Below are positions 1-29,100 of a stretch of 64,000 nucleotides of DNA, one piece after another (positions within the stretch are counted from its first letter, which is position 1; each line of letters starts with the position of its first letter). This stretch comes from Bispira polyomma. Its lineage: Eukaryota. Location of the stretch: contig OZ287753.1 in assembly GCA_965649765.1 (NCBI GenBank), positions 7,502,001 through 7,566,000 on the forward strand, in the 5' to 3' direction. The translations under genes were made by a program, and so were the position numbers. The notes under the pieces were generated by a model. It made no database searches and was not told where the DNA came from. It saw only the letters and a program-made list of their open reading frames with translations.

Positions 1-582
1 TCACATCAATTAGTGATTTAGTGATGTTTCTCACATAGAAATACAATCTAAAATTAAAAAGTATGACGGTCAATCATTAAAATAAATAAGTAACATCAAA
101 GAGCAGGAATTAAGAGATTTAGCAACTACAAATATCCAGTCAGTCTATGTTTACTTGGCCATCTCAAGAAAGTTACCAAGCATGGCTAAATATACTCTTC
201 ACTAGACTTGGATAATAGTCAACTTCTGATGTGGAAAAAGAGTAAAACTATTTTGAACACCACCTATATTTTGCAAATAGTTGTGTAGAATGATTTTAGA
301 ATATAAAACCATTTCTTATATGTGCTTTAATTCTTGTTTGAATAAATATCAATCATTTCTAAGGAATATTTTGGGGGTCTTTCTTTGAGAGGTGTTTATA
401 GTCTGGTCTAACTGTATTAACTAAAAGCCTTGGATATAAATAGAAATTAACATTGACAAAGAACAAGTTCGGATCTTTCTTTAAATAGTCTTTATAGACA
501 GGTCCCACTGTATTAACCATACATGAGGACAACTAAGGGAACTTCTTGGCTTCTTCATGCATATTTTATCTCATTAATGTAC

Positions 583-696
583 CTGTAAAGCCAGCAACAC
601 ATTCGCATGAGAAATCATTTACGAGATCAGTACAGACTCCTTTGTTTTCACATGGCTCTGGAGCACATTCATTAATATTGGTTTCACAGGTATCAC
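583..696 (-). CDS. Array EGF exon [38 protein letters not shown]
   Basis: 114 nt, ttttag/gtacat. Confidence 0.88.
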
Positions 697-3600
697 CTAA
701 AATCACAATTGTTAGTCATAATAATAATATACTTGTATCACAAACTATGCTTTTCAGAACAAATTAGTAAAAGTGGGAAATTTACTATGTCACATCAATT
801 AGTGTTTTAGTGATGTTTCTCAAATAGAAATACAATCTAAAATTAAAAAGTATGACGGTCAAACATTGAAAAATAAGTAACATCAAAGAGCAGGAATTGA
901 GAGATTCAGCAACTACAAACATCCATTCAGTCTACGTTTACTTGACCATCTCCAGAAAGTTACCAAGCATGGCTAAATATACTCTTCACTAGACTTGGAT
1001 AATAATCAACTTCTGATGTTAAAAGGAGTAAAACTATTTGGACACCATCTATATTATGTAAATAGTTGTGTAGAATGATTTAAAAAAAATAAAACCATTT
1101 GTAATATGTGCTTTAATTCTTGTGTTTGAATAAATATCAATCATTTCTAAGGAATATTTTGGGGGTCTTTCTTTGAGAGGTATTTAGAGTCTGGTCTAAG
1201 TGTATTCACTAAAAGCCTTGGATATAATTATGAATTAACATTGAGAAGGAACACGTTGGGCTCTTTATTTAAGAGGTCTTTACAGACAGGTCGCACTGTA
1301 TTAACCATACATGAGGACAACTAAGGGAACTTCTTGGCTTCTTCATGCATATTTTATCTCATTAATGTACCTGTAAAGCCAGCAACACATTCGCATGAGA
1401 AATCATTTACGAGATCAGTACAGACTCCTTCATTTTCACATGGCTCTGGAGCACATTCATCAATATTGGTTTCACAGGTATCACCTAAAATCACAATTGT
1501 TAGTCATAATAATAATATACTTGTATCATTAAACTATGCTTTTCAGAACAAAATAGTAAAAGTGGGAAATTTACTATGTCACATCAATTAGTGTTTTAGT
1601 GATGTTTCTCAAATAGAAATACAATCTAAAATTAAAAAGTATGACGGTCAAACATTATAAAAATAAGTAACATCAAAGAGCAGGAATTAAGAGATTCAGC
1701 AACTACAAACATCCAGTCAGTCTATGTTTACTTGGCCATCTCAAGAAAGTTTCCAAGCATGGCGAAATATACTCTTCACTAGACTTGGATAATAGTCAAC
1801 TTCTGATGTGGAAAAAGAGTAAAACTATTTTGAACACCACCTATATTTTGCAAATAGTTGTGTAGAATGATTTTAGAAAATAAAACCATTTCTTATATGT
1901 GCTTTAATTCTTGTGTTTAAATAAATATCAATCATTTCCAAGGAATATTTTGGGGGTCTTTCTTTCAGAGGTATTTATAGTCTGGTCTAACTGTATTAAC
2001 TAAAAGCCTTGGATATAAATAGAAATTAACATTGACAAAGAACATGTTCGGGTCTTTCTGTAAGAGGTCTTTATAGAGAGGTCTCATTGTATCAACCATA
2101 TATGAGGACAACTGAGGGAACTTTTTGGCTTCTTCATGCATATTTTATCTCATTAATGTACCTGTAAAGCCAGCAACACATTCGCATGAGAAATCATTTA
2201 CAAGATCAGTACAGACTCCTTCATTTTCACATGGCTCTGGAGCACATTCATTAATATTGGTTTCACAGGTATCACCTAAAATCACAATTGTTAGTCATAA
2301 TAATAATATATTTGTATCATTAAACTATGCTTTTCAGAACAAATTAGTAAAAGTGGGCAATTTACTCTATGTCACATCAATTAGTGATTCAGTGATGTTT
2401 CTCACATAGAAATACAATCTAAAATTAAAAAGTATGACGGTCAATCATTAAAATAAATAAGTAACATCAAAGAGCAGGAATTAAGAGATTTAGCAACTAC
2501 AAATATCCAGTCAGTCTATGTTTACTTGGCCATCTCAAGAAAGTTACCAAGCATGGCTAAATATACTCTTCACTAGACTTGGATAATAGTCAACTTCTGA
2601 TGTGGAAAAAGAGTAAAACTATTTTGAACACCACCTATATTTTGCAAATAGTTGTGTAGAATGATTTTAGAATATAAAACCATTTCTTATATGTGCTTTA
2701 ATTCTTGTGTTTGAATAAATATCAATCATTTCTAAGGAATATTTTGGGGGTCTTTCTTTGAGAGGTGTTTATAGTCTGGTCTAACTGTATTAACTAAAAG
2801 CCTTGAATATAAATAGAAATTAACATTGACAAAGAACAAGTTCGGGTCTTTCTTTAAGAAGTCTTTATAGACAGGTCCCACTGTATTAACCATACATGAG
2901 GACAACTAAGGGAACTTCTTGGCTTCTTCATGCATAATTTATCTCATTAATGTACCTGTAAAGCCAGCAACACATTCGCATGAGAAATCATTTACAAGAT
3001 CAGTACAGACTCCTTCATTTTCACATGGCTCTGGAGCACATTCATTAATATTGGTTTCACAGGTATCACCTAAAATCGCAATTGTTAGTCATGATAATAA
3101 TATACTTGTATCACAAACTATGCTTTTCGGTGACGGGAGCAAGCGCGGTAGCAATTACCGGTTGCTTTGAGGTTGTAACAGGAAAAGACAAAAAGTTTCA
3201 CTTAACAAATTTATTTTAACAAATAAAATAACAATTACAGAATTACAAAATTATACAATTACAAAATTACAAAATTACAGTCAACTGAGATACCCTTAAT
3301 AGCTCACACAATAATACAATAATGAAATCAATCTGACCTGACCACAGTCCTGTCCACTCAAATAACAATTAAACCAGTTTGTCCACTGTATCCAGCAATC
3401 TGTCTTGAGATCCGCTCAATGTCCACACAATGCCTGTATCCTGCTATCCGTTCAGTGTCCACGCACACAAAATGTATATATCCAGAGAATCTGCACAACC
3501 AAGCTATCCAGTCCAGGATGCAAACACTATCCAATATGTAGTAAATCCAATCTCTGGTAGATCCACAACTTTTATCCAGTTCACTCCAATGAGTTCACCA

Positions 3601-6600
3601 CAAAATGTATATAACAAACAGTTTATATCCACAGTATAGTAGTTCATATAGCATTCATATAGCACCTCAGCTCCACTAACTCTCTTCTGTGGCCAGGCTG
3701 TCAACCCTTATATATACCACTGCTAGAGAAGGTTGCTAAAATGTGTAAGCAATCGCTAGGACATTCCAGAGATGAGATATACATATGAATACAACTTTAA
3801 TAACCTTCAGAAATAAAATAGAACTGGTTTCTAGAATCTTAGGGGTTTCCCCAAATCTATCAATAGATCACTCCAGCAGAGTGTAAGACCATTAGTACTA
3901 ACTAGACCGGATTTTCTTCAACACACCACAATGTCCCCATATGTAACACCTCCCCCCTTAAAGAAAAATTTTGGAAGCCAAGGGGTTACAAAATTTCATA
4001 TTACACAAAACATAAGTGAACATACAGTGTACATATTGATCCATGAAACATTGTATTTTAAGTTACACAAGTAATATCCATAAGTAAACATCTAAGTTTT
4101 ACAAGTTACAACTTTTCAGTTACTAACATACAAAATAACCTTTAACTACAACTTCTTGATAGAGCATCAGCACAAATGTTATCCTTTCCTTTAACATGCT
4201 CTATTTGTAAACTGTATTCTTGCAAAACCAAACTCCAATTCAATAGACGTCTGTTTTTGTTTTTCATTTTGTGCAAGAATACTAAAGGGTTGTGATCTGT
4301 GTACACAATAGTTGGTTTTGATGATGAAGATATATATATATCAAAGTGTTTAATGGCTAAAATGAGGGCTAAACATTCCTTTTCTATTGTAGAGTAATTC
4401 TTTTGATGTACGTTAAATTTTGTTGAAAAATAACAAATGGGATGTTCAATATCTTCATCGTCAGTCTGCAGTAAAACTGCACCTGCCCCAACATCACTGG
4501 CATCCACAGCTAACCGAAATGGTCTATTGAAGTCTGGAGCAGTTAGTACAGGCTCCGAACAGAGAACATTTTTTACTTTGTCAAATGCTTTTTGACAAGT
4601 TTCAGACCAGTGATATTTTACGTTTTTTTTCAAGAGCTCAGTCAGTGGAGCAGTGACATCTGAGAAATTTTTACAAAATTTCCTATAATAACCTAACATT
4701 CCCAGAAACCTCATTAAACTTTTCTTATTTCTAGGAATGGGATAGTCAATGATGCTTTCAACTTTTGCTTTAATTGGTGTCACAACTCCATGACCAACTA
4801 CATGCCCTAAGTAAACAACCTTCGCTTTTACAAAGTCACTTTTCGATAGATTCACAGTAAGGTTGGCTTGCTTGAGCTGAAACAGAACTTGTTCAAGTCT
4901 TTTCAAATGTTCTTCCCAAGTATCACTAAAGATGACAATATCATCCACATACACTTCAACCCCTTCTAAGTTCCTTAAACATATATTCATTAGTCTCTGA
5001 AATGTAGCTTGGGAATTTTTCATGCCAAATGGCATTACCTTGTACTGATACAGACCATCGGGAGTTACAAATGCTGATATTTCTTTTGCCAAAAGTTACC
5101 AAGCATGGCTAAATATACTCTTCACTAGACTTGGATAATAGTCAACTTCTGATGTGGAAAAAGAGTAAAACTATTTTGAACACCACCTATATTTTGCAAA
5201 TAGTTGTGTAGAATGATTTTAGAATATAAAACCATTTCTTATATGTGCTTTAATTCTTGTGTTTGAATAAATATCAATCATTTCTAAGGAATATTTTGGG
5301 GGTCTTTCTTTGAGAGGTGTTTATAGTCTGGTCTAACTGTATTAACTAAAAGCCTTGGATATAAATAGAAATTAACATTGACAAAAAACAAGTTCGGGTC
5401 TTTCTTTAAGAAGTCTTTATAGACAGGTCCCACTGTATTAACCATACATGAGGACAACTAAGGGAACTTCTTGGCTTCTTCATGCATATTTTATCTCATT
5501 AATGTACCTGTAAAGCCAGCAACACATTCGCATGAGAAATCATTTACGAGATCAGTACAGACTCCTTCATTTTCACATGGCTCTGGAGCACATTCATCAA
5601 TATTGGTTTCACAGGTATCACCTAAAATCACAATTGTTAGTCATAATAATAATATACTTGTATCATTAAACTATGCTTTTCAGAACAAAATAGTAAAAGT
5701 GGGAAATTTACTCTATGTCACATCAATTAGTGTTTTAGTGATGTTTCTCACATAGAAATACAATCTAAAATTAAAAAGTATGATGGTCAAACATTATAAA
5801 AATAAGTAACATCAAAGAGCAGGAATTGAGAGATTCAGCAACTACAAATATCCAGTCAGTCTATGTTTACTTGGCCATCTCAAGAAAGTTACCAAGCATG
5901 GCTAAATATACTCTTCACTAAACTTGGATAACAGTCAACTTCTGATGTGGAAAAAGAGTAAAACTATTTTGAACACAACCTATATTATGCAAATGGTTGT
6001 GCAGAATTATTTTAAAAAATAAAACCATTTCTAATATGTGCTTTAATTTTTGTGTTTAAATAAATATCAATCATTTCCAAGGAATATTTTGGGGGTCTTT
6101 CTTTGAGAGGTATTTATAGTCTGGTCTAACTGTATCAACTAAAAGCCTTGGATATAAATAGAAATTAACATTGGGAAAGAACACATTGGGGTCTTTCTTT
6201 AAGAGGTCTTTAAAATCAGGTCTCACTGTGTCAACCATACATGAGGACAACTAAGGGAACTTCTTGGCTTCTTCATGCATATTTTTTCTCATTAATGTAC
6301 CTGTAAAGCCAGCAACACATTCGCATGAGAAATCATTTACAAGATCAGTACAGACTCCTTCATTTTCACATGGCTCTGGAGAACATTCATTAATATTGGT
6401 TTCACAGGTATCACCTAAAATCACAATTGTTAGTCATAATAATAATATATTTGTATCATTAAACTATGCTTTTCAGAACAAATTAGTAAAAGTGGGCAAT
6501 TTACTCTATGTCACATCAATTAGTGATTTAGTGATGTTTCTCACATAGAAATACAATCTAAAATTAAAAAGTATGACGGTCAATCATTAAAATAAATAAG

Positions 6601-9600
6601 TAACATCAAAGAGCAGGAATTAAGAGATTTAGCAACTACAAATATCCAGTCAGTCTATGTTTACTTGGCCATCTCAAGAAAGTTACCAAGCATGGCTAAA
6701 TATACTCTTCACTAGACTTGGATAATAGTCAACTTCTGATGTGGAAAAAGAGTAAAACTATTTTGAACACCACCTATATTTTGCAAATAGTTGTGTAGAA
6801 TGATTTTAGAATATAAAACCATTTCTTATATGTGCTTTAATTCTTGTTTGAATAAATATCAATCATTTCTAAGGAATATTTTGGGGGTCTTTCTTTGAGA
6901 GGTGTTTATAGTCTGGTCTAACTGTATTAACTAAAAGCCTTGGATATAAATAGAAATTAACATTGACAAAGAACAAGTTCGGATCTTTCTTTAAATAGTC
7001 TTTATAGACAGGTCCCACTGTATTAACCATACATGAGGACAACTAAGGGAACTTCTTGGCTTCTTCATGCATATTTTATCTCATTAATGTACCTGTAAAG
7101 CCAGCAACACATTCGCATGAGAAATCATTTACGAGATCAGTACAGACTCCTTTGTTTTCACATGGCTCTGGAGCACATTCATTAATATTGGTTTCACAGG
7201 TATCACCTAAAATCACAATTGTTAGTCATAATAATAATATACTTGTATCACAAACTATGCTTTTCAGAACAAATTAGTAAAAGTGGGAAATTTACTATGT
7301 CACATCAATTAGTGTTTTAGTGATGTTTCTTAAATAGAAATACAATCTAAAATTAAAAAGTATGACGGTCAAACATTGAAAAATAAGTAACATCAAAGAG
7401 CAGGAATTGAGAGATTCAGCAACTACAAACATCCATTCAGTCTACGTTTACTTGACCATCTCAAGAAAGTTACCAAGCATGGCTAAATATACTCTTCACT
7501 AGACTTGGATAATAATCAACTTCTGATGTTAAAAGGAGTAAAACTATTTGGACACCATCTATATTATGTAAATAGTTGTGTAGAATGATTTAAAAAAAAT
7601 AAAACCATTTGTAATATGTGCTTTAATTCTTGTGTTTGAATAAATATCAATCATTTCTAAGGAATATTTTGGGGGTCTTTCTTTGAGAGGTATTTAGAGT
7701 CTGGTCTAAGTGTATTCACTAAAAGCCTTGGATATAATTATGAATTAACATTGAGAAGGAACACGTTGGGCTCTTTATTTAAGAGGTCTTTACAGACAGG
7801 TCGCACTGTATTAACCATACATGAGGACAACTAAGGGAACTTCTTGGCTTCTTCATGCATATTTTATCTCATTAATGTACCTGTAAAGCCAGCAACACAT
7901 TCGCATGAGAAATCATTTACGAGATCAGTACAGACTCCTTCATTTTCACATGGCTCTGGAGCACATTCATCAATATTGGTTTCACAGGTATCACCTAAAA
8001 TCACAATTGTTAGTCATAATAATAATATACTTGTATCATTAAACTATGCTTTTCAGAACAAAATAGTAAAAGTGGGAAATTTACTATGTCACATCAATTA
8101 GTGTTTTAGTGATGTTTCTCAAATAGAAATACAATCTAAAATTAAAAAGTATGACGGTCAAACATTATAAAAATAAGTAACATCAAAGAGCAGGAATTAA
8201 GAGATTCAGCAACTACAAACATCCAGTCAGTCTATGTTTACTTGGCCATCTCAAGAAAGTTTCCAAGCATGGCGAAATATACTCTTCACTAGACTTGGAT
8301 AATAGTCAACTTCTGATGTGGAAAAAGAGTAAAACTATTTTGAACACCACCTATATTTTGCAAATAGTTGTGTAGAATGATTTTAGAAAATAAAACCATT
8401 TCTTATATGTGCTTTAATTCTTGTGTTTAAATAAATATCAATCATTTCCAAGGAATATTTTGGGGGTCTTTCTTTCAGAGGTATTTATAGTCTGGTCTAA
8501 CTGTATTAACTAAAAGCCTTGGATATAAATAGAAATTAACATTGACAAAGAACATGTTCGGGTCTTTCTGTAAGAGGTCTTTATAGAGAGGTCTCATTGT
8601 ATCAACCATATATGAGGACAACTGAGGGAACTTTTTGGCTTCTTCATGCATATTTTATCTCATTAATGTACCTGTAAAGCCAGCAACACATTCGCATGAG
8701 AAATCATTTACAAGATCAGTACAGACTCCTTCATTTTCACATGGCTCTGGAGCACATTCATTAATATTGGTTTCACAGGTATCACCTAAAATCACAATTG
8801 TTAGTCATAATAATAATATACTTGTATCACAAACTATGCTTTTCGGAACAAATTAGTAAAAGTGGGAAATTTACTATGTCACATCAATTAGTGTTTTAGT
8901 GATGTTTCTCACATAGAAATACAATCTAAAATTAAAAAGTATGACGGTCAAACATTGAAAAATAAGTAACATCAAAGAGCAGGAATTGAGAGATTCAGCA
9001 ACTACAAACATCCATTCAGTCTACGTTTACTTGACCATCTCAAGAAAGTTACCAAGCATGGCTAAATATACTCTTCACTAGACTTGGATAATAATCAACT
9101 TCTGATGTTAAAAGGAGTAAAACTATTTGGACACCATCTATATTATGTAAATAGTTGTGTAGAATGATTTAAAAAAAATAAAACCATTTGTAATATGTGC
9201 TTTAATTCTTGTGTTTGAATAAATATCAATCATTTCTAAGGAATATTTTGGGGGTCTTTCTTTGAGAGGTATTTAGAGTCTGGTCTAAGTGTATTCACTA
9301 AAAGCCTTGGATATAATTATGAATTAACATTGAGAAAGAACACGTTGGGCTCTTTCTTTAAGAGGTCTTTACAGACAGGTCGCACTGTATTAACCATACA
9401 TGAGTACAACTAAGGTAACTTCTTGGCTTTTTCATGCATATTTTATCTCATTAATGTACCTGTAAAGCCAGCAACACATTCGCATGAGAAATCATTTACG
9501 AGATCAGTACAGACTCCTTCATTTTCACATGGCTCTGGAGCACATTCATCAATATTGGTTTCACAGGTATCACCTAAAATCACAATTGTTAGTCATAATA

Positions 9601-12600
9601 ATAATATACTTGTATCATTAAACTATGCTTTTCAGAACAAAATAGTAAAAGTGGGAAATTTACTATGTCACATCAATTAGTGTTTTAGTGATGTTTCTCA
9701 AATAGAAATACAATCTAAAATTAAAAAGTATGACGGTCAAACATTATAAAAATAAGTAGCATCAAAGAGCAGGAATTGAGAGATTCAGCAACTACAAACA
9801 TCCAGTCAGTCTATGTTTACTTGGCCATCTCAAGAAAGTTACCAAGCATGGCTAAATATACTCTTCACTAAACTTGGATAACAGTCAACTTCTGATGTGG
9901 AAAAAGAGTAAAACTATTTTGAACACAACCTATATTATGCAAATGGTTGTGCAGAATTATTTTAAAAAATAAAACCATTTCTAATATGTGCTTTAATTTT
10001 TGTGTTTAAATAAATATCAATCATTTCCAAGGAATATTTTGGGGGTCTTTCTTTGAGAGGTATTTATAGTCTGGTCTAACTGTATTAACTAAAAGCCTTG
10101 GATATAAATAGAAATTAACATTGGGAAAGAACACATTGGGGTCTTTCTTTAAGAGGTCTTTACAATCAGGTCTCACTGTGTCAACCATACATGAGGACAA
10201 CTAAGGGAACTTCTTGGCTTCTTCATGCATATTTTTTCTCATTAATTTACCTGTAAAGCCAGCAACACATTCGCATGAGAAATCATTTACAAGATCAGTA
10301 CAGACTCCTTCATTTTCACATGGCTCTGGAGCACAATCATCAATATTGGTTTCACAGGTATCACCTAAAATCACAATTGTTAGTCATAATAATAATATAC
10401 TTGTATCATTAAACTATGCTTTTCAGAACAAATTAGTAAAAGTGGGAAGCTTACTATGTCACATCAATTAGTGTTTTATTGATGTTTCTCACCTAGAAAT
10501 ACAATCTAAAATTAAAAAGTATGACGGTCAACCATTAAAATAAATAAGTAACATCAAAAAGCAGGAATTGAGATATTTAGCAACTACAAACATCCATTCA
10601 GTCTATGTTTACCTGACCATCTCAAGAAAGTTACCAAGCATGGCTAAATATACTCTTCACTAGACTTAGATAATAATCAACTTCTGATGTTAAAAGGAGT
10701 AAAACTATTTTGGACACCACCTATATTATGCAAATAGTTGTTTAGATTGTTTCAAAATAAAAACATTTCTAAAAAAAGTGAAATTTTTTAGAAAGATTTT
10801 AATAAAATTAAGAAACATAATTTTATTGGAGAGTTGAAATTGTTTTCCATATACAGTTGACATACCTTCAAATCCCTCAACACAATCACATGAATATTCA
10901 TTTATTCCATCTACACAAACACCTTCATTTTCACAAAGATGACTAACACAATCATCAATGTTTGTCTCACATCTTCCTCCTAAAATAAGTATCAATCAAT
11001 ATCATTAACAACCTTTTGCATTTACATCACATTACAGATAATAAAATACCAGTTGTAAATTATGATTCTAGTATAGGATGGTCACATTATTTTTTTACAT
11101 AAAAATTTCACTGCAATTTATTTTCTTGTTGGCACAGAAATCAGTAAATCGTACTCATGCTAACATGAGACATGTATATTTGCAAGCTTTTTTTCCAAGA
11201 GAGGTCTTGATATATAGATGTATAATGTCAAGTTGTAAGACTGATCTACACAAAGTTTGATATATTTATTTGAACATTAAAACAGTAAAGGCTAGGAAAT
11301 GGTGGATTTTGGGTTACATGTATAGGTCCAGATAATAACTCCAACCCATTAAAATTCAACTTTTAATCTCAAATGATTCATCACACTCATATAATGTCAA
11401 GTTAATATCTGATGACATATTAAATATTAAAGAGTGTCCCTGATATAAAAGACCCAAAAACCATTATGTTTGTGTTGCATGTTTAGATCTAAATCCTAAA
11501 TCAAGATCACATCTATCAAAATAAAGAATGTGGGTATTATGTCAACAGTAATATTATTAAATTTGAAAAATTATAAACTAGTGACATGAATAAGAAGTAT
11601 GCCAAAATGTCATTGTTACCCCAAAGCGTATTAAATGCTTGGAGAAAGATTTTACTAAAATAAACAAATATAATTTAATGGAGAGTTGAAATTGTTTTCC
11701 ATGTACAGTTAACATACCTTCAAATCCCTCAACACAGTCACATGAATATTCATTTATTCCATCTTCACAAACACCTCCATTTGCACAACGATGTCCAACA
11801 CAATCGTCAATGTTTGTCTCACAGCTTTTTCCTGAAATATATATCCATAAATATCATTGACAACCCTTTGCATTTGCATCACATTAGAAATAGCAAAATA
11901 CCGTTGTTTTGAGGACAATGATATTGCCATCAACAAAATGCATATTAGGTGTTTTTCAGGGATAAAATGTATAAATTATTTTCAAATATAAAATTTGTCT
12001 GATCTAGTTTTTCTGTGACAATCATATAAAAAAAAGAATATTTAATAAAAAAAGACATCAGGAACAAATTAAAGTGGCATATTACCATGTATACAACAAC
12101 ACTAATGTGTTCAATAGTATTTAAAAATTGTGAATTGAATCATTGAATTTTATTTGTAATTGAAGTACAGAAGACCATTACATAAAATTATGAAAACAAA
12201 TCGTGGACATGGATAACTTATATCAAGGAATACACTCTATTTTGAAGAATGGAAATACTGATAAAAAGTTAGTTGTATTTTGCATCAATATTAAAATCTA
12301 GTATAAAGATAATAATTTTTAATATACACTTTGTGACCACATGGGAAAGGGCCAACTTTATTGAACAATAACAGTCAACTGGCGACTTTGACATTAACTA
12401 ACTGGGAGAGCACCTGCATCTTGAGGTGAGACCCAGTTGGCATGTTATGCAACACTTATACCGTGGTCACACTGGGCTTACGTTTTGATTCGCACAAAAA
12501 ATGGCTAGCGCAAGGTAAAACATAGTGAAATGTAATGAAACACAAGCAGAATGTTGTAAATGTAAGTAAACATAAAAATGGGTGAACAAGATGGTCCCTT

Positions 12601-14091
12601 AATATCCCTTTTTTCAAAACGTAAAAAATTTCAGACTGCTCAAAATTTTTTTACGTTTTCAGTCGTTTTTTCGAAATTTAAGGAAATGGGTGGTGCATTC
12701 GTGGGAAACGTATGACACATAAACAATGCGTTTTTGACTTAAAGGACAGGAGTAAAACGAACTATACTTCCAAATAATATTAAAAGCGAGGAGAACTTGA
12801 ATACAACAGGTTTACAAATATTAACAGGAAAACGAGACCGAAACGGGTTTAGATACGTGGCTAACGTATTTCCAAAACTTACCTAACAAGGCTAATGTAT
12901 ATCTAAAATGTGGCTAACGAGTTGAACATAGTTGAAACGGCTATTAAAAGGTATTAAATGCGTGTACAAACGTGTACAGATCCAAACTGAACATGTACAT
13001 AACAGCATATACATTGATTTTTGCTACAGTTCCCGAAATTCCCACAGTTTTTCACTTAAAACGTAACACGCATGGTACTTAGTGTGACCATAGCTTTAAT
13101 ATGTTGAGCCAATTCTCCCTAGTGTAAACATATAAAAATATGTGTCAAATTTCCACAAAAATTCAATGTTACTACATACAATCATCAATCATTCTATATT
13201 TACAATCCAGAAAATTAGAGTGTTGGGAAAACAGCTAGTGACAGAGACTCAGAATATGAAATGATTTTTATGCCACTGTATAATCTGCCTCTATTTTGGA
13301 TGAAACGAATATATTTTGAAATTGTAAACCAGTGTGTCACCCAGAAGGTCACAGAGTTGAAACAAGCGATGGCAAGCATGGGCTATGCCATTTATAACCA
13401 CATATTTTAATTTGATTCTAAAATATCTAGTGGCACATGGCGTGGTACATTTCCGTGACATCTGGTAAAATCTCTTTTATTTGATGACATAACACCCCTA
13501 CCTTCAAATCCTTCAACACAGTCACATGAATATCCATTGAGTTCATCTTTACAGACACCTCTGTTTTCACACCCATGTCCAATGCAATCGTCAGTGTTTA
13601 TCCCACATCTGCTCCCTGAAATAAATTGTTATATCTTATCAATAAGAAATATGCCACAAGGTATCCAACCTTCAAACGTCTAAAGAAAAGAAATTAACCA
13701 CACTACATAGGTGGACACATTACTGGAATACTTAGTTTTACTATTTAACATTAAAACAGAATAAATAGTTTTTAAGTATATTTGTATGTGCAATTACGCA
13801 TCATTTATACTTTCCTTTCATTGTTACCCAAAGGTGTAGTAAATGCTTTAATAAAGATGTTCATGAAATGAACTAAACTTATTTAATGGAACCGTGAATT
13901 GATTTCCATATGCAGTTGGCATACCTTCAAAAACCTCAACAATAATTTGCTGGAAAAAGAATTTGTGTCAGAAAGATAGATTCTTGAAATAAAGATAAAT
14001 ACTAAAGTTAAATCGGAAGTAGTTTTATTACCAATCTACAAGTGATGAAATGCCGATTAGGGAGAGAACAAGAACAGCCTATAAACATTAA

Positions 14092-14161
<70 letters not shown>

Positions 14162-17100
14162 ATTTCAAAAAAACTACACATAGATAGCATAAGTAAGAAA
14201 ACTATTAACATTTCTATTAACTTACTAACACTTATTTGTTCATTAATTGTAATAACTTGCACTTTAAATGTTGCACAGCCAAATGAAATGAGTTTGAGGT
14301 CAAGGTCATAAGATGGTAGTTTGACCTTGTGTGTGAGGTTTTGAAAGGTAAGAGGTCAGATGTAGTTTGGGAGATTTATTTATAAATCTTTAGTTTATAA
14401 ATGTTTAGCTTCTATGTACAACTATACAGAAAATTTAGATAAGAACTAAAATTTTAACATGCCAATAAGCAAGTAAAGGGTTTAAAAAACCCAACACATA
14501 AGATAAAATATAAGAGTAAGGGAACTCATAGACAAAGCAACATGGTAAATATAACCAATGATGACTAAGAATATAATGTTAGTAGCAATATGGTAAGTAT
14601 AACCAATCATAGCTAAAAAGAAGAAAATAAAGCAATATGGTAAATATAACCAATGATAACTACAAAATAAAATAACATGCTAGTACAGCAATATGGTAAA
14701 TATAACCAGTGATAACTAAAATTAAAATGCTACTGTAGCAATATGGTAAGATTAACCAATCATAGCTTAAACAATTTTAAAAGAATTAAAGTCCTAAGGC
14801 AAAGAAGTGAGTGTTAAATCCACAATCCTTAGATATTCTACAAATATGTACAAGGGAGGAGGGTTGGGAGATTTTTGATGTTGTTAGTTTGATTTCTGAC
14901 TTAATAATGAGCTTATCATAGAAAGGGCGCCAAAGCGCTGGGGAGAGTAAGAGAGATTTGTCTTCTGACTTATCAGTGAGAGTATAAGAAAGGCGGGAAA
15001 TGCCGAGGAGAGTGGAGGTGTTATCTGAATGCAGCATTGGGGTGAGGAGGAGTGACTGTGATAAGCAAGTAGTTTGAAAATAGAAGTACAGTAAAGTATA
15101 GCATTTCCGCGGCTGACTAGCCATGCTACTTCGTGGCAGTGACGAAGACAGGTACAACTTTTTAAAGTTGCTGGTCTTGTGGACCTGAAATATATTTTTG
15201 TAAACTTCATGCACTAAATACGCCAGAATGTCGTTGTTACCTATAATTATTAAATGATTCGGGAAAGATGTTCATAAAATGACTTCACTGGAGATTTGAA
15301 ACTGTTATCCATGTACAGTTGACATACCTTCAAATCCTTCAACACAGTCACATGAATATTCATTTATTCCATCTACACAAACACCTCCATTTTCGCAACG
15401 ATGTCCATCACAATCGTCAATGTTTGTGTTACACCTACTTCCTAAAATGAATTTATTTGTCAATATCTGTGACAAGCCTTTGCCTTTACACCTCATTAGA
15501 GATATTAAAATACTAGCTGTAATTGATGCTTCTGAAATAGGATGGTCACATTATTTTTTGATACCAAAAATCTGTAATTTATTTTTTGTTGTCGGCACAG
15601 AAGTAAAAAAAAATATTTGTGACAATTTTATTCGCTAAATTTGGGATTGATTCATTTCGTTACCTTGATGTTTTAGCTGCACTTGAATCCATGAATAAAA
15701 TAATTTTTAAAATAACCATAAGTTGGATAAGTAATATAAATGAGTGCATTCTTGCTCAATATTTTAAGCAAGAAAATGTGATATGTACAATGTACTTTCA
15801 TGGTAAACCTTGGCCATTCTTTATTGAAACTGTAGCAGTCCATCAAAAACCTAGGAAAATGTCGATTATGTCTGAAGTAAAGTATATCGTACAGATTGTG
15901 TGGCAAATTTTTAGGGCATTTGTTATCCATTTCTTTCCACAGATAAACAGCTACTATATGTTTGAATCCCTATGATTACTGTGCCATTCATTGACTATCT
16001 CTAATTGTCTACAACTTTATGTACATTTCTAGTACCAAAGAGTTTGAATTGACTTGTTTGTTTTTTTACGTCGCTTTCAACAGCTTTGGTCATATTGAGA
16101 CGGCCAGGTTCAGTGGTTGGCACTGGAAACTGCTGACCCATGGCAAGTACCTGACAAACTTTTTCACATGAAGAAGGAATCCGTGTGATTCGATCCCAAG
16201 AGGTGAGAGGCCAGTGATTTTAAAACAGACGCTTATATCCACTAGGCCACCGCTGTCCCTAGCTGTAGTACCAAGTTTTTTTGAATCTCTATTCGTAATA
16301 CCTTCAAATCCTTCTTGACATTCACACACATAGCCATTGATTCTGTCTTGGCATTGCCCTCCATTCTGACAAGGGTTTACAGCACAGTCGTTTATGTTGG
16401 TTTCACACCTGCTGCCTACAATGGACCAATTACATGTGCTAAAACCAATTATCGCCAGCAGACCGGCTGCACACACTGAAATAGCTTTGGTGCATGTTTG
16501 GGCAATATGCTTAAACGTATGCCACAATGCACCAACTAACCCTTATCTACCTGAAACATTATGTAGTAGTTAAAACAAATTTACTTATTGTCACCAATTG
16601 TTTGTTCTGTTATTGTAATTTTGTACGAGGTCATTATGGCTTGATGTCTTCTTGTAGTCATTTGTGGCAGGTTTGTACATGGGGTCATTGTAGGTTTAAT
16701 ATGTTTTTTTCTGGGGTTATGGGTATAGTATTTTTCCTATTTTATGTGGCTGTCAGTGTTTTTGAACTTCACGTGGAAGGTGCTGAAGGTGAATATATTT
16801 CTTGGTGTTTGTTTAACCAGTGGATGAGGTAATGTTCATAATGTATAGTAATGGCTGTAGTTAAAAAAAATATTTTATCCTTTTTTATACCTTATGTGAA
16901 AGTTTTTAATTGTTGTAACATGAGGGACACAATATCTAGTAAATATAACTTCACAGGAATATACTTCACTTGAATATATTCACAACACAATGAAAATATA
17001 CCATACAATATTTACGCAGGTCCACAAAAAGTTAATTTTGAATACAACACAATTTTGTTGTGTTACCTTTGTTATGAAAGTTGTGTGTTTCTTTCAATTG

Positions 17101-20100
17101 TTGTTTTTTGGGGGGCCAGAAAGTTGCATTGCCCAGTGGGGTTGTGCTGCTGGTATTTATGTTGGTGTGATTTGTGAAGTCTCAATTACCTTCATGTCCT
17201 GACACTGGTGTATTCATCTTCACCTTTATACCCCGACACACAGTTACAGGTGTATTCATCCTTATCTTTATACCCTGACAGACACAGGTGTATTCATCCT
17301 CACCTTTATACCCTGCCACACAGTTACAGGTAAATTCATCCTTACCTTCATATTCAGGCAAACTCCTATGTATTCATCCTTACCTTCATATTCTGGCAGA
17401 CACCTGTGTATTCATCCTTACTTTCATATTCTGGCAGACTCCTGTGTATTCATCCTTACCTTCATATTCTGGCAGACTCCTGTGTATTCATCCTTACCTT
17501 CATATTCTGGCAGACTCCTGTGTATTCATCCTTACCTTCATATTCAGGCAGACACCTGTGTATTCATCCTTACCTTCATATTCAGGCAGACACCTGTGTA
17601 TTCATCCTTACCTTCATAGTCAGGCAGACACAGGTGTATTCATCCTTACCTTCATACCCTGCCACACAGTTACAGGTGAATTCATCCATACCTTCATATT
17701 CTGGCAGACACCTGTGTATTCATCCATATCTTCATACCCCAACACATAATTACAGGTGTATTCATCCTTACCTTTATATTCTGGCAGACACCTGTGTATT
17801 CATCCTTACCTTCATATTCAGGCAGACTCCTGTGTATTCATCCTTACCTTCATATTCAGGCAGACTCCTGTGTATTCATCCTTACCTTCATATTCAGGCA
17901 GACACCTGTGTATTCATCCTTACCTTCATATTCAGGCAGGCTCCTGTGTATTCATCCTTACCTTCATATTCAGGCAGACTCCTGTGTATTCATCCTTACC
18001 TTCATATTCAGGCAGACTCCTGTGTATTCATCCTTACCTTCATATTCAGGCAGACTCCTGTGTATTCATTCTTAACTTCATATTCAGGCAGACACCTGTG
18101 TATTCATCCTTACCTTCATACCCTGCCACACAGTTACAGGTGTATTCATCCTCCCCATCGACACATGCGCCACCATTCTGACAGGGGGAAGACTCGCATT
18201 CATTGAAGTCACAAGGGGTGCCTAAACAGACCAAACAATAAGCTTGTAACCAACTTTAACACAGGTCAAGTTGTACTACACTACTACTGAGAACCGTTCT
18301 TATTTCTCAGCAAGTTAAAGCGCATCGTGTTTGTATGTGTGTCTGGGGTGTATTCTATAACCTTCCTAAAAAAATAGGAAACACAAATGAAGTCATCGAT
18401 TTGAATTGATTTTCAGTATGACTATTTAACAACTGCTTATTATGTGGTGATTGACAGTTCATTAGTGGAGAAAAGCAGTACATTGTGGTTTGTCAAGGTT
18501 TTTTCTGTAGTGCAAACCACCAGCCGTCAGCAATCTTTACACCCTCTGGATATTAAACCTGCCACCCAGTCTTAAGTTGCTTCACAATGATTTAGACAAA
18601 TAGTGACTTTTAAATAGTACAGTATTTGATCTGTTGGACAAAGATATATTGCGATTCTTTTGCTACTAAATTGTTAATGTCTAGTCTGTGCACATGTATT
18701 GTATTCTGCATTTTCAACGCCTTATTGATATAAGGCATGCTCCAACGACAGAATCGATTAACCAACTGAGAAAATAATAGCAAGATCATAATAAAGGATG
18801 TGGAGGTGTCCAGGGAGGGAATTAACAGGAGTTTGTTTTCTCCTAAACCCAGAGTGTCTTTCTAGTGATCTAAAATCAACTGAGAGACTATTATATAACA
18901 CCGGGGCATGGTTCTAGATCCAACCATCTTATTGGGTTTAACAGAGAAAACAAAGTTTTCTCTCTTGGGGTTACTATAAGACAGATGAGTGGCAAGGTAG
19001 GAAGGCTGTTGAAAGCTTTAAAAGTCGTAACATAGAACACACATAGCAAAAACATACTGAGGTTTCTAATATTATATGTGTCAAAGCATTATATACAGTT
19101 TATTAGACTAATCAACCGATGTCACAAAGGGTGTGCTGACAAAATGTCGATGGACAAAATGCAACTTTGTGAAGGTAAACAAAATGCTGGCCCGTTTTGG
19201 AGTTGAACAAAATGCCAGTGATGTCAAAACATCTTCCAATATGTCAATATCTCATAGGAATGTGGATGGTTGGCTACAGGATATTCCGTCTTAGTATCAG
19301 TTACTAGAGCACCCGTGCAATGCAAAGCAACTCTCTGAGAACTAGATCAAGTTTTCGACTGCCATTTCATGGCATTTGCAGCCACCGGTGACAGAGTGTG
19401 CACCATTGGCAAGTTAAACACATAACAAATAAAAAGAATCAGTTAGTAATTGTGATTTCTTCATTTCTCATTGGTGGGAATAAGTGTGAATTAGTGGGTG
19501 TTAGTAGTTTTGTGTTAGGTCCTCGGCATGTTCATATCAAAAAGGCCACGAAACAAAATTTGGTAGATGCCACGAATATTGACAAATGTTTGTCTATGAG
19601 ACCAGGCCATTATATCATACAAAAATACAAAAAGAATCGTCTTTTTATTTAGTTTGTGGTTGTATTGATTAATTCTATAGCTGTACACAATATGATAACT
19701 TTGAGTTAATAGTTTTAGCGTGTACCGGGGGAAGACTGCTACGGGAAAAATACCATAAAATTTTGTAAAAAATCAACGTTTATGGCTACATCTTTACGTT
19801 TAATTGTTACTATTTATGTTTTTCTACCCTTTTTACATTAAATTTGAGTAATTTTACTGTTTTATGTTGTGAATTTAGCTAGAAAATTATAATAGCCGAT
19901 TATCGCCCACTTCGTTTGGCGGGAGTGGGCCGTACTCTACTATAATATTTTGTAATAAGATCTACATCTGCACGGTTATTTGTTGGTATTTATGTTTTTT
20001 CTAACCTTTTTACATTAAATTTGAGTAGTTTTGCTGTTTTATGTTGTGAATTTAGCTAGAAAATTATAATAGCCGATTATCGCCCACTTCGTTTGGCGGG

Positions 20101-26100: not shown

Positions 26101-29100
26101 AGTTCGATTCTAACCTGGGTCGGCGACCCTGGGCCGTCTTAGTATGGACTTTAGTTTCGATTGTGGTCGTTGTCCTGTTAAAACGGGATGCAATCAGTTG
26201 GATCTGGAAGGTCGCCCCGCACTTACATTTTCCTGCCCAAAATATAACATTTATTGATTTTTCGCCCCTATCTCTAAATCTGGCCCACATTGCCAATCGT
26301 ACTTGATACTGGAACACCCACCTAACATTAGATCTTTATTCTGAAGATGTCACTGCCTATTATCTTAAAAAAGTGAAAACTGTAAAAAACTGTTCATGTC
26401 TTTGTAAAATAAACTTTTCAAGTGTCCAAAGCTGTTTGACAAAAACCTAATTTGCCTGTAAATATCGATCAACTTCTATTAAACTAAGGGATTCTGTCCT
26501 AATCATAAATGCTGAATGGGGTGTTCCCCACGATTCACTGTGCTCTACCAAAGGGGGGAAAAAACACATGGATTCGTCACCTGGGACTCTGTGTGTTATG
26601 GCTGGGTCCAAATTTTGCGTTTCACGAAAGTGACGCCAATGCAAACTAGGCGATCTACAAATTGCACTCATCAGCACTAAATATGCATGTTTTTTAGCAT
26701 TCGCCATGCTTTATCAACTCGACCCTAACCCAATGACAACTTGTTATTTATGCAATTAATGTGGTAAGGTGGCAGTTTTTTTCAGTCAGTGCATTTTTCT
26801 TGCAATGGCGATACATGCAACAATGGCGATTACTGCACAGATGATCAATTCTGCCCACTGTAATCTCGATTGAGTTCTTCTAAACTGGCTTACAGGTCAA
26901 ATATAGTGATCGGCGATCATTTAAATCTGTAAATTGAAATCGTACTTTGGGAATTTTTATCTGTCTCGAGTTAGTATCAGCTACATGGTTAAAAAAGGGG
27001 GGTACGTCCTGGAAAAGTGCCCCATGGAGAACAAGAGAACATCACTCTGGTCAGGTCACTTTCATTGCCACCACTTTGGTCAAACTCAAAATAGTGAAAA
27101 ACGTGACCCACGGCAAAAATGGTGGTGACGAAAGATGATATCCACTATGACATTTCTGTACTCCTATGTTACAGTATAATGTCCCTACCCACTATGATAT
27201 TCCTCCACTTCTATCTCACACTACAATGTCTCTATCCACCATGACATCCCTGTACTCCTATTTTACACTATAATGTCCCTACCCACTATGACATCCCTGT
27301 ACTTCTAGATTACACTATAATGTCCATATCCACTATTACATCCCTGTACTCCTATATTACACTATAATATCCTTATCCACTATGACACCCCTATACTCCT
27401 ATTTTACACTATAATGTCCATATCCACTATGACTCCTACATTACACTATAGGGGGCCGCGGTGGCTTAGTGGTTAGCTAGCATTGCGCTTCACAATCACT
27501 GGTGTCTCACCTCTGGACAGCCTGAGTTCGAATCCCGTCGATGCCTATGTGAGAAAGGTGGTAGTTCCTTACTGTGGGCCGCTGGTTTCAGTGCAGAACC
27601 TTGATCAACTGTATGCGTGTTTCTTCCAGCATTTCTAACTACCCGTCCCAATATAACCTAAACAGATACTAGAGTGGACGTTAAATATCCAAATTCAAAT
27701 TCTAGATTACACTATAATGTCCCTACCCACTATGATATCGCTGCACTCCTGCCGACACTCCTCCCAGCGCCAGGACCTCCAGTACGAGTACTCTCTGTCT
27801 GTAGAACACCAGGGGGAGTCATTGTTGGTTGTGATACACACACTGTACTCATTGTCCTCGTAGATAAAGGGGATCACACAATCACTGTGAGGCACCCAAT
27901 TACATTCTGTCCTGATATCATCTGTAAAACATGGGTAGTGTAAGCACTGTACACTAAATCAAATTGTATAAAGGTTACATCAGGTTATCATGAAACCATT
28001 TGCTGAATTTCTTTGAGAATACGAAAACTGTCTATTCTGCATGGTACACTTGGTACACATGGTCGACACTCCTATCGCCAGAACCTGCATTACAACAACT
28101 AGCTAATCTCTCCTGAGTATACCTGTACTTAAATACTCTCTCCTGAGTACACCTTTTCTAAGCTATTCTTACCTCAGTACTTACTTATTCCATCTTTGGT
28201 ACACCTGTACTTACCTATTCTCTTCTCAGTACACCTTTCCTTAGCTAGTCTCTCATCATTAAACCTGTACTTACCTATTTTCTCCTCAGTACACCTAAGG
28301 GGCCGCAGTGGCCTAGTGGTTAGCAAGCATTGCGCTTCACAATCACTGGTCTCTCACCTCTGGGCGGCGTGAGTTCAAATACTGTCGATGCCTATGTGGG
28401 AAAGGTGGTAGTTCCTTACTGTGGGCCGCTGGTTTCAGTGCAGAACCTTGACCAACTGTATGCAGTGTTTCCTCCAGCGTTTCCAACTATCCGTCCCAAT
28501 ATAACCTCAAACAGGTACTAGAGTTGACGTTAAATATCCCAATTCAAAAAAAAAATTCCTCAGCACACCTGTACTTACCTATTCTCTCCTGAGTATACCT
28601 TTCATTAGCTATTCTCTCATCAGTACACCTGTACTTACCTATTCTCTCCCCGGTACACCTGTACTTACCTATTCTCTCCTGAGAACACATTTCCTTAGCT
28701 ATTTTGATCTCAGTACACATGTACTTACTTATTGTCTCTTTGGTAAACCTGTACTTACAAATTATCTTCTCAGTACACCTGTCCTTACCTATTATCTCAT
28801 CAGTACACCTGCCCTTACCTGTTATCTCCTCGGTACACCTGTCCTTACCTATTCTCTCCTCAGTACACCTGTACTTACCTTTTCTGTCCAGAGTACACCT
28901 GTACTCTGTACACTCCTCCCACCTCCAGGATCTATACCACACATACGCCTCATCAGTACTACACCATGGGTAGTCACGGTCATCATAGTTTGCCGTTGTA
29001 CACCCCTCATACTGGGTACCATCATAGGTGAATGGAATTTGGCAATCAGCATGGGGTATCCACCCACAAGTCTCCGTAGTTACTAAAATATACAGTTTCA

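Follow-up and report, generated by a model that had tools for sequence, protein, structure and literature searches.

Is the tandem repeat of about 790 bp found at one end of this stretch of Bispira polyomma DNA a satellite, or does it belong to a gene? The stretch, referred to below as the window, comprises 64,000 nucleotides of contig OZ287753.1 (C6:7,502,001-7,566,000). An earlier note made from these letters alone had proposed that the apparent satellite is coding, each unit carrying one exon for a calcium-binding EGF (cbEGF) module. Based on the analyses described here, we consider, with a probability of about 0.75, that the repeat makes up the middle of a single large gene on the minus strand. 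Its product would be a type-I membrane protein that crosses the membrane once and has two fibronectin type II (FN2) modules, with about 50 EGF modules in its stalk.

A direct-repeat search of window positions 1-10,800 returned 11 copies spaced by 786-794 bp or, in a single case, by 2,552 bp. Tandem Repeats Finder, with a longest period of 500, did not report the ~790-bp array. Each unit consists of one 114-nt phase-1/1 exon of the form ttttag/GTGATA...TTACAG/gtacat and its intron, the window introns measuring 674-680 nt except for one, which has 2,438 nt. The array is cut at window position 1, past which it runs on for about 28.7 kb; as a whole, it occupies C6:7,473,269-7,512,772 (39.5 kb), with the minus strand coding. 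Thus, the 11 window exons of the earlier note were all recovered, but the limits that it gave to the array had to be abandoned in favor of 40 intact exon copies, with no partial or broken copy among them. The locus is single: a search of the own genome with one unit matched this interval only, and a search with the exon protein over the whole 1.04-Gb genome found the same 40 copies at 89-100% amino acid identity, with identities of 65% or less elsewhere.

Array exons were numbered E01 to E40 in gene order, so that the window holds E11 to E01. On the combined repeat and exon reading, this part of the array covers window positions 1-10772 on the minus strand. Its exons, all on that strand, are E11 (583-696), a 114-nt phase-1/1 cbEGF exon with the variant residues N8 and K18; E10 (1371-1484), which encodes the consensus protein; E09 (2162-2275) and E08 (2956-3069), both with N8; E07 (5508-5621); E06 (6301-6414), with N8 and S11; E05 (7093-7206), with N8 and K18, in a unit identical to that of E11; E04 (7881-7994); E03 (8672-8785), with N8; E02 (9460-9573); and E01 (10251-10364), the 5'-most array exon of the gene, which has D9 and a gtaaat donor.

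Extraction and translation of the 11 window exons confirmed that each keeps 114 nt, phase 1/1 and six Cys, as had been proposed, and all 40 exons of the array have this length and six Cys, with no stop and no indel. The translation begins with DTCETNI(D/N)(E/D)C(A/S)PEPCEN(E/K), and the few residue changes listed in the earlier note proved exact (D/N at residue 8, E/D at residue 9, A/S at residue 11 and E/K at residue 18). The exon register is shifted with respect to the domain, each exon providing Cys6 for one EGF and then Cys1-5 for the module that follows. In protein profile searches made exon by exon, single exons passed the cut-offs of the Pfam families EGF (PF00008; 27-36 bits, cut-off 21.5) and hEGF (PF12661; 29.3-35.8 bits, cut-off 29.3). 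Read directly, the calcium-binding consensus N-x-D/N-E/D-C occurs in 40/40 exons, as does the beta-hydroxylation consensus C-x-D-x4-F-x-C between Cys3 and Cys4, the few variants being confined to x positions or to the permitted D/N and E/D choices.

The architecture of the gene extends on both sides of the array. In 5' to 3' order, two FN2 modules are followed by six diverged EGF exons, the 40 homogenized EGF exons and about four EGF modules, after which come a basic juxtamembrane segment, a transmembrane helix spread over two exons and a cytoplasmic tail of about 50 amino acids. Within the window, and all on the minus strand, the first and second FN2 modules lie in open frames at 28547-29137 and 27710-27958, respectively (limits of the frames, not of exons). 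The first EGF exon of the gene, of 108 nt and phase 1/1, is found at 18114-18221, and diverged EGF exons of 114 nt follow at 16302-16415, 15328-15441, 13502-13615, 11718-11831 and 10866-10979, the last of these being a phase-1 exon just upstream of the array with 63% amino acid identity to the array exons. On the other side, 3' of E40, the remaining EGF modules (about four) also lie in phase-1 exons. The exon after the last EGFs reads ...RQRRSRSGRQEADEPQTETGASTSTIAGTSVGLLGLIGIVGL, and the last exon goes on with AAYVIKRRLSRKK and reaches a stop about 50 residues later. A stop-transfer sequence, KRRLSRKK, follows the transmembrane segment, an arrangement that suggests a classic type-I anchor; Pfam found no domain in the exons after the last EGF. 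The extracellular rod imagined in the earlier note is therefore better described as anchored than as free, being the stalk on which a type-I membrane protein carries two FN2 modules at the outer end. The symmetric phase to which that note pointed was borne out: every exon from window position 18,221 to the last exon is in phase 1/1, and since every junction is in phase 1, the frame is kept at any number of EGF exons.

The acceptor of the array is AG in 40/40 exons, in the form ttttag in 39 of them, and a CTAAC branch point is present at about -17. Donors are gtacat (29 exons), gtaaat (8), gtaaaa (2) or gtacgt (1); the AG/gtacat donor attributed to the window exons was found in 10 of the 11, the other one having gtaaat. 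With matches to the U1 consensus at 7/9 positions for CAG/GTACAT and 8/9 for CAG/GTAAAT, the array donors are not notably weak. All or most exons would be spliced in series into one mRNA, and the resulting 50 or so calcium-locked EGF modules would form a stiff stalk. In fragments of fibrillin and Notch, cbEGF modules measure 2.5-3 nm each and are joined by calcium-locked interfaces. By analogy, the stalk may reach 100 nm or more, keeping the FN2 tips off the membrane.

Exons and introns of a unit have a common history, and differences between them thus reflect constraint. The comparison of exon and intron divergence between units, which the earlier note had put forward as a check, gave a nucleotide diversity of 0.035 for exons and 0.101 for introns. 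Of the 114 exon positions, 26 are segregating sites, as against 417 of the 678 intron positions (Fisher p = 1.3e-14), and the 46 indel events of the introns (30 deletions and 16 insertion runs) have no counterpart in the exons (Poisson P(0) = 4e-4). Both the coding nature of the satellite and the indels assigned to its introns are upheld by these figures. Cys codons are intact in 240/240 cases, the sole change in any of them being a synonymous TGC to TGT. At the nucleotide level, exons share 95-100% identity, with at most 6 of 114 nt off the consensus, and the 23 distinct proteins that they encode show differences at 1-4 loop residues. Along the unit, diversity is at its minimum over the exon and the adjoining intron bases, ~60 at the start of the intron and ~70 at its end. 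Purifying selection acts on the exons relative to their own introns.

Several points weigh against the reading of the repeat as the cbEGF stalk of a membrane protein. The Pfam profile EGF_CA (PF07645) scored only 20.7 bits on one array exon, under its 27-bit cut-off, although such a score is expected from an exon devoid of the Cys6 of its own domain, and one EGF exon of the 3' flank reached 31.7 bits, above the cut-off. The rigidity and length of the stalk would hold by analogy with other cbEGF arrays. Finally, the ratio of nonsynonymous to synonymous changes (pN/pS) among exons is only ~0.67, the variant codon types comprising 7 synonymous and 20 nonsynonymous ones; because of this ratio, amino acid constraint outside the Cys/Gly/aromatic framework is considered weak, or else masked by gene conversion and by how few the sites are. 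The same ratio would suit an array of real but mostly unused DNA, in which few exons are spliced in, or which belongs to a silent or decaying gene, the exons being intact only as a result of the young age of the duplications. The gene-5' half is indeed very young, with a unit divergence of 0-1%. We nevertheless regard this explanation as unlikely: in the older 3' half (E23-E40), introns diverge by about 10% and carry many indels, yet 18/18 exons keep their length, frame, Cys and splice sites, and in the same units exon diversity is one third of intron diversity.

The history of the array can be read from its introns. Clustered at 3%, they yield, from E01 onward, the subtype string abcbdaedcbdaedadaedfbg..., in which E03-E08 and E09-E14 present the same six subtypes (cbdaed) in the same order, with 0-0.3% divergence. 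A block of six units, 6,510 bp long and including a retroelement fragment, was duplicated here at ~99.9% identity: C6:7,497,734-7,504,310 equals the stretch located 6,510 bp further on, save a handful of mismatches. From E01 to E19, intron divergence from the nearest unit is 0-1.3%. The nearest relatives of E26-E35 are found five units apart, at 1.8-5.5% divergence, a pattern that marks an older duplication of a 5-unit block, and every unit from E22 on is a subtype of its own. The array grew by duplication of single units and of multi-unit blocks, and register-shifted block duplications are the pattern that unequal crossing-over produces, in agreement with the mode of growth suggested from the window. 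The term "expanding" used at that time fits the gene-5' half but not the 3' half, which is older and made of diverged units.

The retroelement fragment provides an additional landmark. It is a truncated sequence of the Ty3/gypsy type, about 2 kb in size, with RVT_1 and RNase H domains, located in the intron between E07 and E08 (window 3129-5093, minus strand), and it accounts for the 2,552-bp unit. It contains a 317-aa stop-free frame for reverse transcriptase and RNase H (window 4145-5095) that is oriented like the host gene. Near-identical copies of this insert occupy 4 of the 39 introns (2438, 2438, 2429 and 2415 nt), and it was therefore inserted once and then copied along with its unit. 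Three layers are superimposed in the array: an old 5-unit register, the retroelement insertion with its four copies and the ~99.9% block duplication.

Blocks of 6.5 kb that are ~99.9% identical are also the type of sequence that assemblers can misplace, and part of the copy number might have been created or inflated by the assembler. Short reads were used to address this point. The three sequencing runs (X1-X3) represent two samples (S1 and S2) from one study, and are of genomic DNA since their contigs tile introns; their unique depths are ~16x, 80x and 13x. For short-read contig pieces, normalized depth was compared with the average number of times that their 31-mers occur in the assembly, contig depth being a rough measure (within S2, the unique depth alone varies between 54 and 115). 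In S1 (X1), the piece at window 8696-8803 has a depth of 18.4 for an expected 17.7, the piece at 9099-9222 a depth of 3.96 for 4.03, and the piece at 9246-9412 a depth of 3.8 for 3.5. The second run of S1 (X3) gave 4.7 and 4.1 for the latter two, and S2 gave 2.4 for the piece at 9099-9222 and 1.7, for an expected 3.4, at 9246-9363. Summed over the array, depth is 15-30 times the unique depth, within the roughness of contig depths. None of the short-read pieces spans the array, but the assembled copy numbers agree with the independent reads of S1, which argues against an assembly artefact, an explanation that we hold to be quite improbable. The normalized depth of array pieces in S2 is ~0.5-0.7 of that in S1 (window 8600-10400), and the summed array depth ~0.67; with contig depths this noisy, the values are a weak hint of a difference in copy number between the two samples.

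Besides the exon and its borders, every array intron has a low-diversity island in its middle (0.05-0.07, as compared to 0.10-0.16 around it; unit columns 451-540), examples of which are found at window 142-258, 935-1045, 1721-1835 and 2513-2629. Searches of the island gave no Rfam match at E-values up to 1, no open frame and no significant fold on either strand (z-scores of about -0.9), and the idea of a hosted small RNA or structure was dropped on these grounds. Tandem duplicated exons with conserved flanks, together with an unexplained island in each intron, may also recall the mutually exclusive clusters of Dscam, in which case a transcript would include only one of the 40 exons. A choice among exons as similar as these would however generate almost no diversity, the 23 proteins being distinguished by 1-4 loop residues, and the island has neither a significant fold nor an Rfam match. 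Moreover, the symmetric 1/1 phase permits the exons to be included one after another, as they are in ordinary EGF genes. Dscam-type clusters are made of differing exons, and those of this array are 95-100% identical; the candidate was rejected, and we give it almost no weight beside the serial splicing of a cbEGF stalk.

The closest parallels are found among coding macrosatellites. Warburton et al. 2008 (PMC2588610) described 23 human arrays that are wholly intragenic, with at least one exon per unit encoding a domain, including those of LPA, DMBT1 and NBPF. As in the LPA KIV-2, DMBT1 SRCR and NBPF arrays (PMC2588610), the present locus consists of head-to-tail units, each with whole exon(s) plus intron and one domain, within one gene. 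It also shares with LPA-type arrays the high identity of units including their introns, the higher-order repeats and the transposable elements copied along, features explained by unequal crossing-over, and in those arrays copy number sets the number of domains. Among the features of the KIV-2 type, exon-bearing head-to-tail units, frame neutrality and homogenization of introns with higher-order repeats are present here; a copy number that varies between individuals is weakly hinted at by the noisy depths of S2, and inclusion of the repeated exons in the mature transcript is predicted. The same study outlined, for human LTR-derived arrays, a succession of amplification into units, insertion of a transposable element in one of them, expansion and later unequal crossing-over (PMC2588610). 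The two systems differ in their domain, cbEGF in the present case, and in the size of the unit, 0.79 kb here and 5.6 kb in LPA (PMC2588610). Copy-number polymorphism is documented for LPA, whereas the array described here is known from one assembly and from noisy depths. Another giant membrane-anchored extracellular protein rich in EGF, Drosophila dumpy, possesses ~40 near-identical repeats subjected to concerted evolution and unequal crossing-over (PMC2930355). These are PIGSFEAST repeats of 102 aa, which are not EGF modules and are contained in one large exon (PMC2930355), in contrast to the exon plus intron of each repeat in B. polyomma.

Searches of public proteins revealed no representative with this exact repeat. 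The best match to the exon was XP_013388135.1 of the brachiopod Lingula anatina, annotated as "neurogenic locus notch homolog", with 34 stretches at 55% identity. This protein has about ten near-identical cbEGF pairs of 76 aa with the motif CETNIDDC...CTDLV...GFTGK. With its VWD and TIL domains and its lack of FN2, it differs in architecture and is thus not an ortholog. Its repeat unit comprises two EGFs. Variation in EGF cassettes is already visible in the public annotation of L. anatina, where isoforms are 38 or 76 aa apart: 17 isoforms, which are database predictions, are annotated at 2441, 2517, 2555 and 2593 aa, in steps of 38 aa, equivalent to one EGF. A match at 60% identity was dropped, as it comes from an intronless gene on a metagenome contig, beside prokaryote-type genes.

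A second, independent homogenized cbEGF array was detected in the genome of B. polyomma, on the minus strand of another contig (C10:51668001-51688000). It has at least 32 near-identical repeats organized in exon-intron units, with 1-3 EGFs per exon, variable unit sizes and blocks 97-99% identical, and probably extends past the 20 kb analysed. Its repeat is a different sequence, with 56-58% amino acid identity to that of the first array.

Two known families with EGF repeats were also considered. Sea-urchin fibropellins (uEGF/SpEGF) have one exon per EGF repeat, mutually similar introns and transcripts that vary in EGF number; they are secreted proteins, CUB-like at the N-terminus and avidin-like at the C-terminus. 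An identity with fibropellins was rejected, the present gene having FN2 modules and a transmembrane anchor. A Notch receptor was likewise rejected: in Notch, the EGF repeats are followed by LNR repeats, a heterodimerization domain and a long intracellular part with RAM and ankyrin repeats, whereas this gene has no LNR or ankyrin repeats and a tail of only ~50 aa. Notch is not known to carry FN2 modules.

Further observations concern the 3' end of the gene and its surroundings. A basic run, RQRRSRSGR, lies just outside the membrane in the juxtamembrane segment (C6:~7470000, minus strand) and could be a cleavage site of the proprotein-convertase type. After the transmembrane exon, about seven copies of a minisatellite of ~60 bp were found (C6:7469400-7469960, minus strand), the unit of which corresponds to the 3' end of that exon plus its gtaagtga donor. 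About 21 kb past the stop of the EGF gene, CUB and TSP1 exons (C6:7447454-7449164, minus strand) are probably part of another gene next to it, encoded on that same strand.

If unequal crossing-over alters the number of modules, as the block duplications lead us to infer, the length of the stalk would differ between alleles. One may go further and view the stalk as a heritable, splice-adjustable ruler, in which the allelic number of EGF modules and the skipping of exon subsets would together set the reach of the FN2 modules, a design that would be recurrent in several receptors of this genome, with the C10 array as an example. Young 6-unit blocks would then still be gained and lost, and symmetric exons skipped in subsets. 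This proposal is tentative and in our opinion rather doubtful.

As a coding array, the locus stands out by its size but otherwise illustrates, in an ordinary manner, a known route of gene growth, and it reveals no new mechanism. It offers a clean and unusually large case of a protein domain array caught growing, and one in which automated repeat masking would conceal ~1,500 codons that belong to a genuine gene. If copy number varies among individuals, it may become a model for the tuning of receptor stalk length, comparable to human LPA. Should the ruler proposal be true, B. polyomma would represent a natural system for the evolution of receptor reach through coding macrosatellites.

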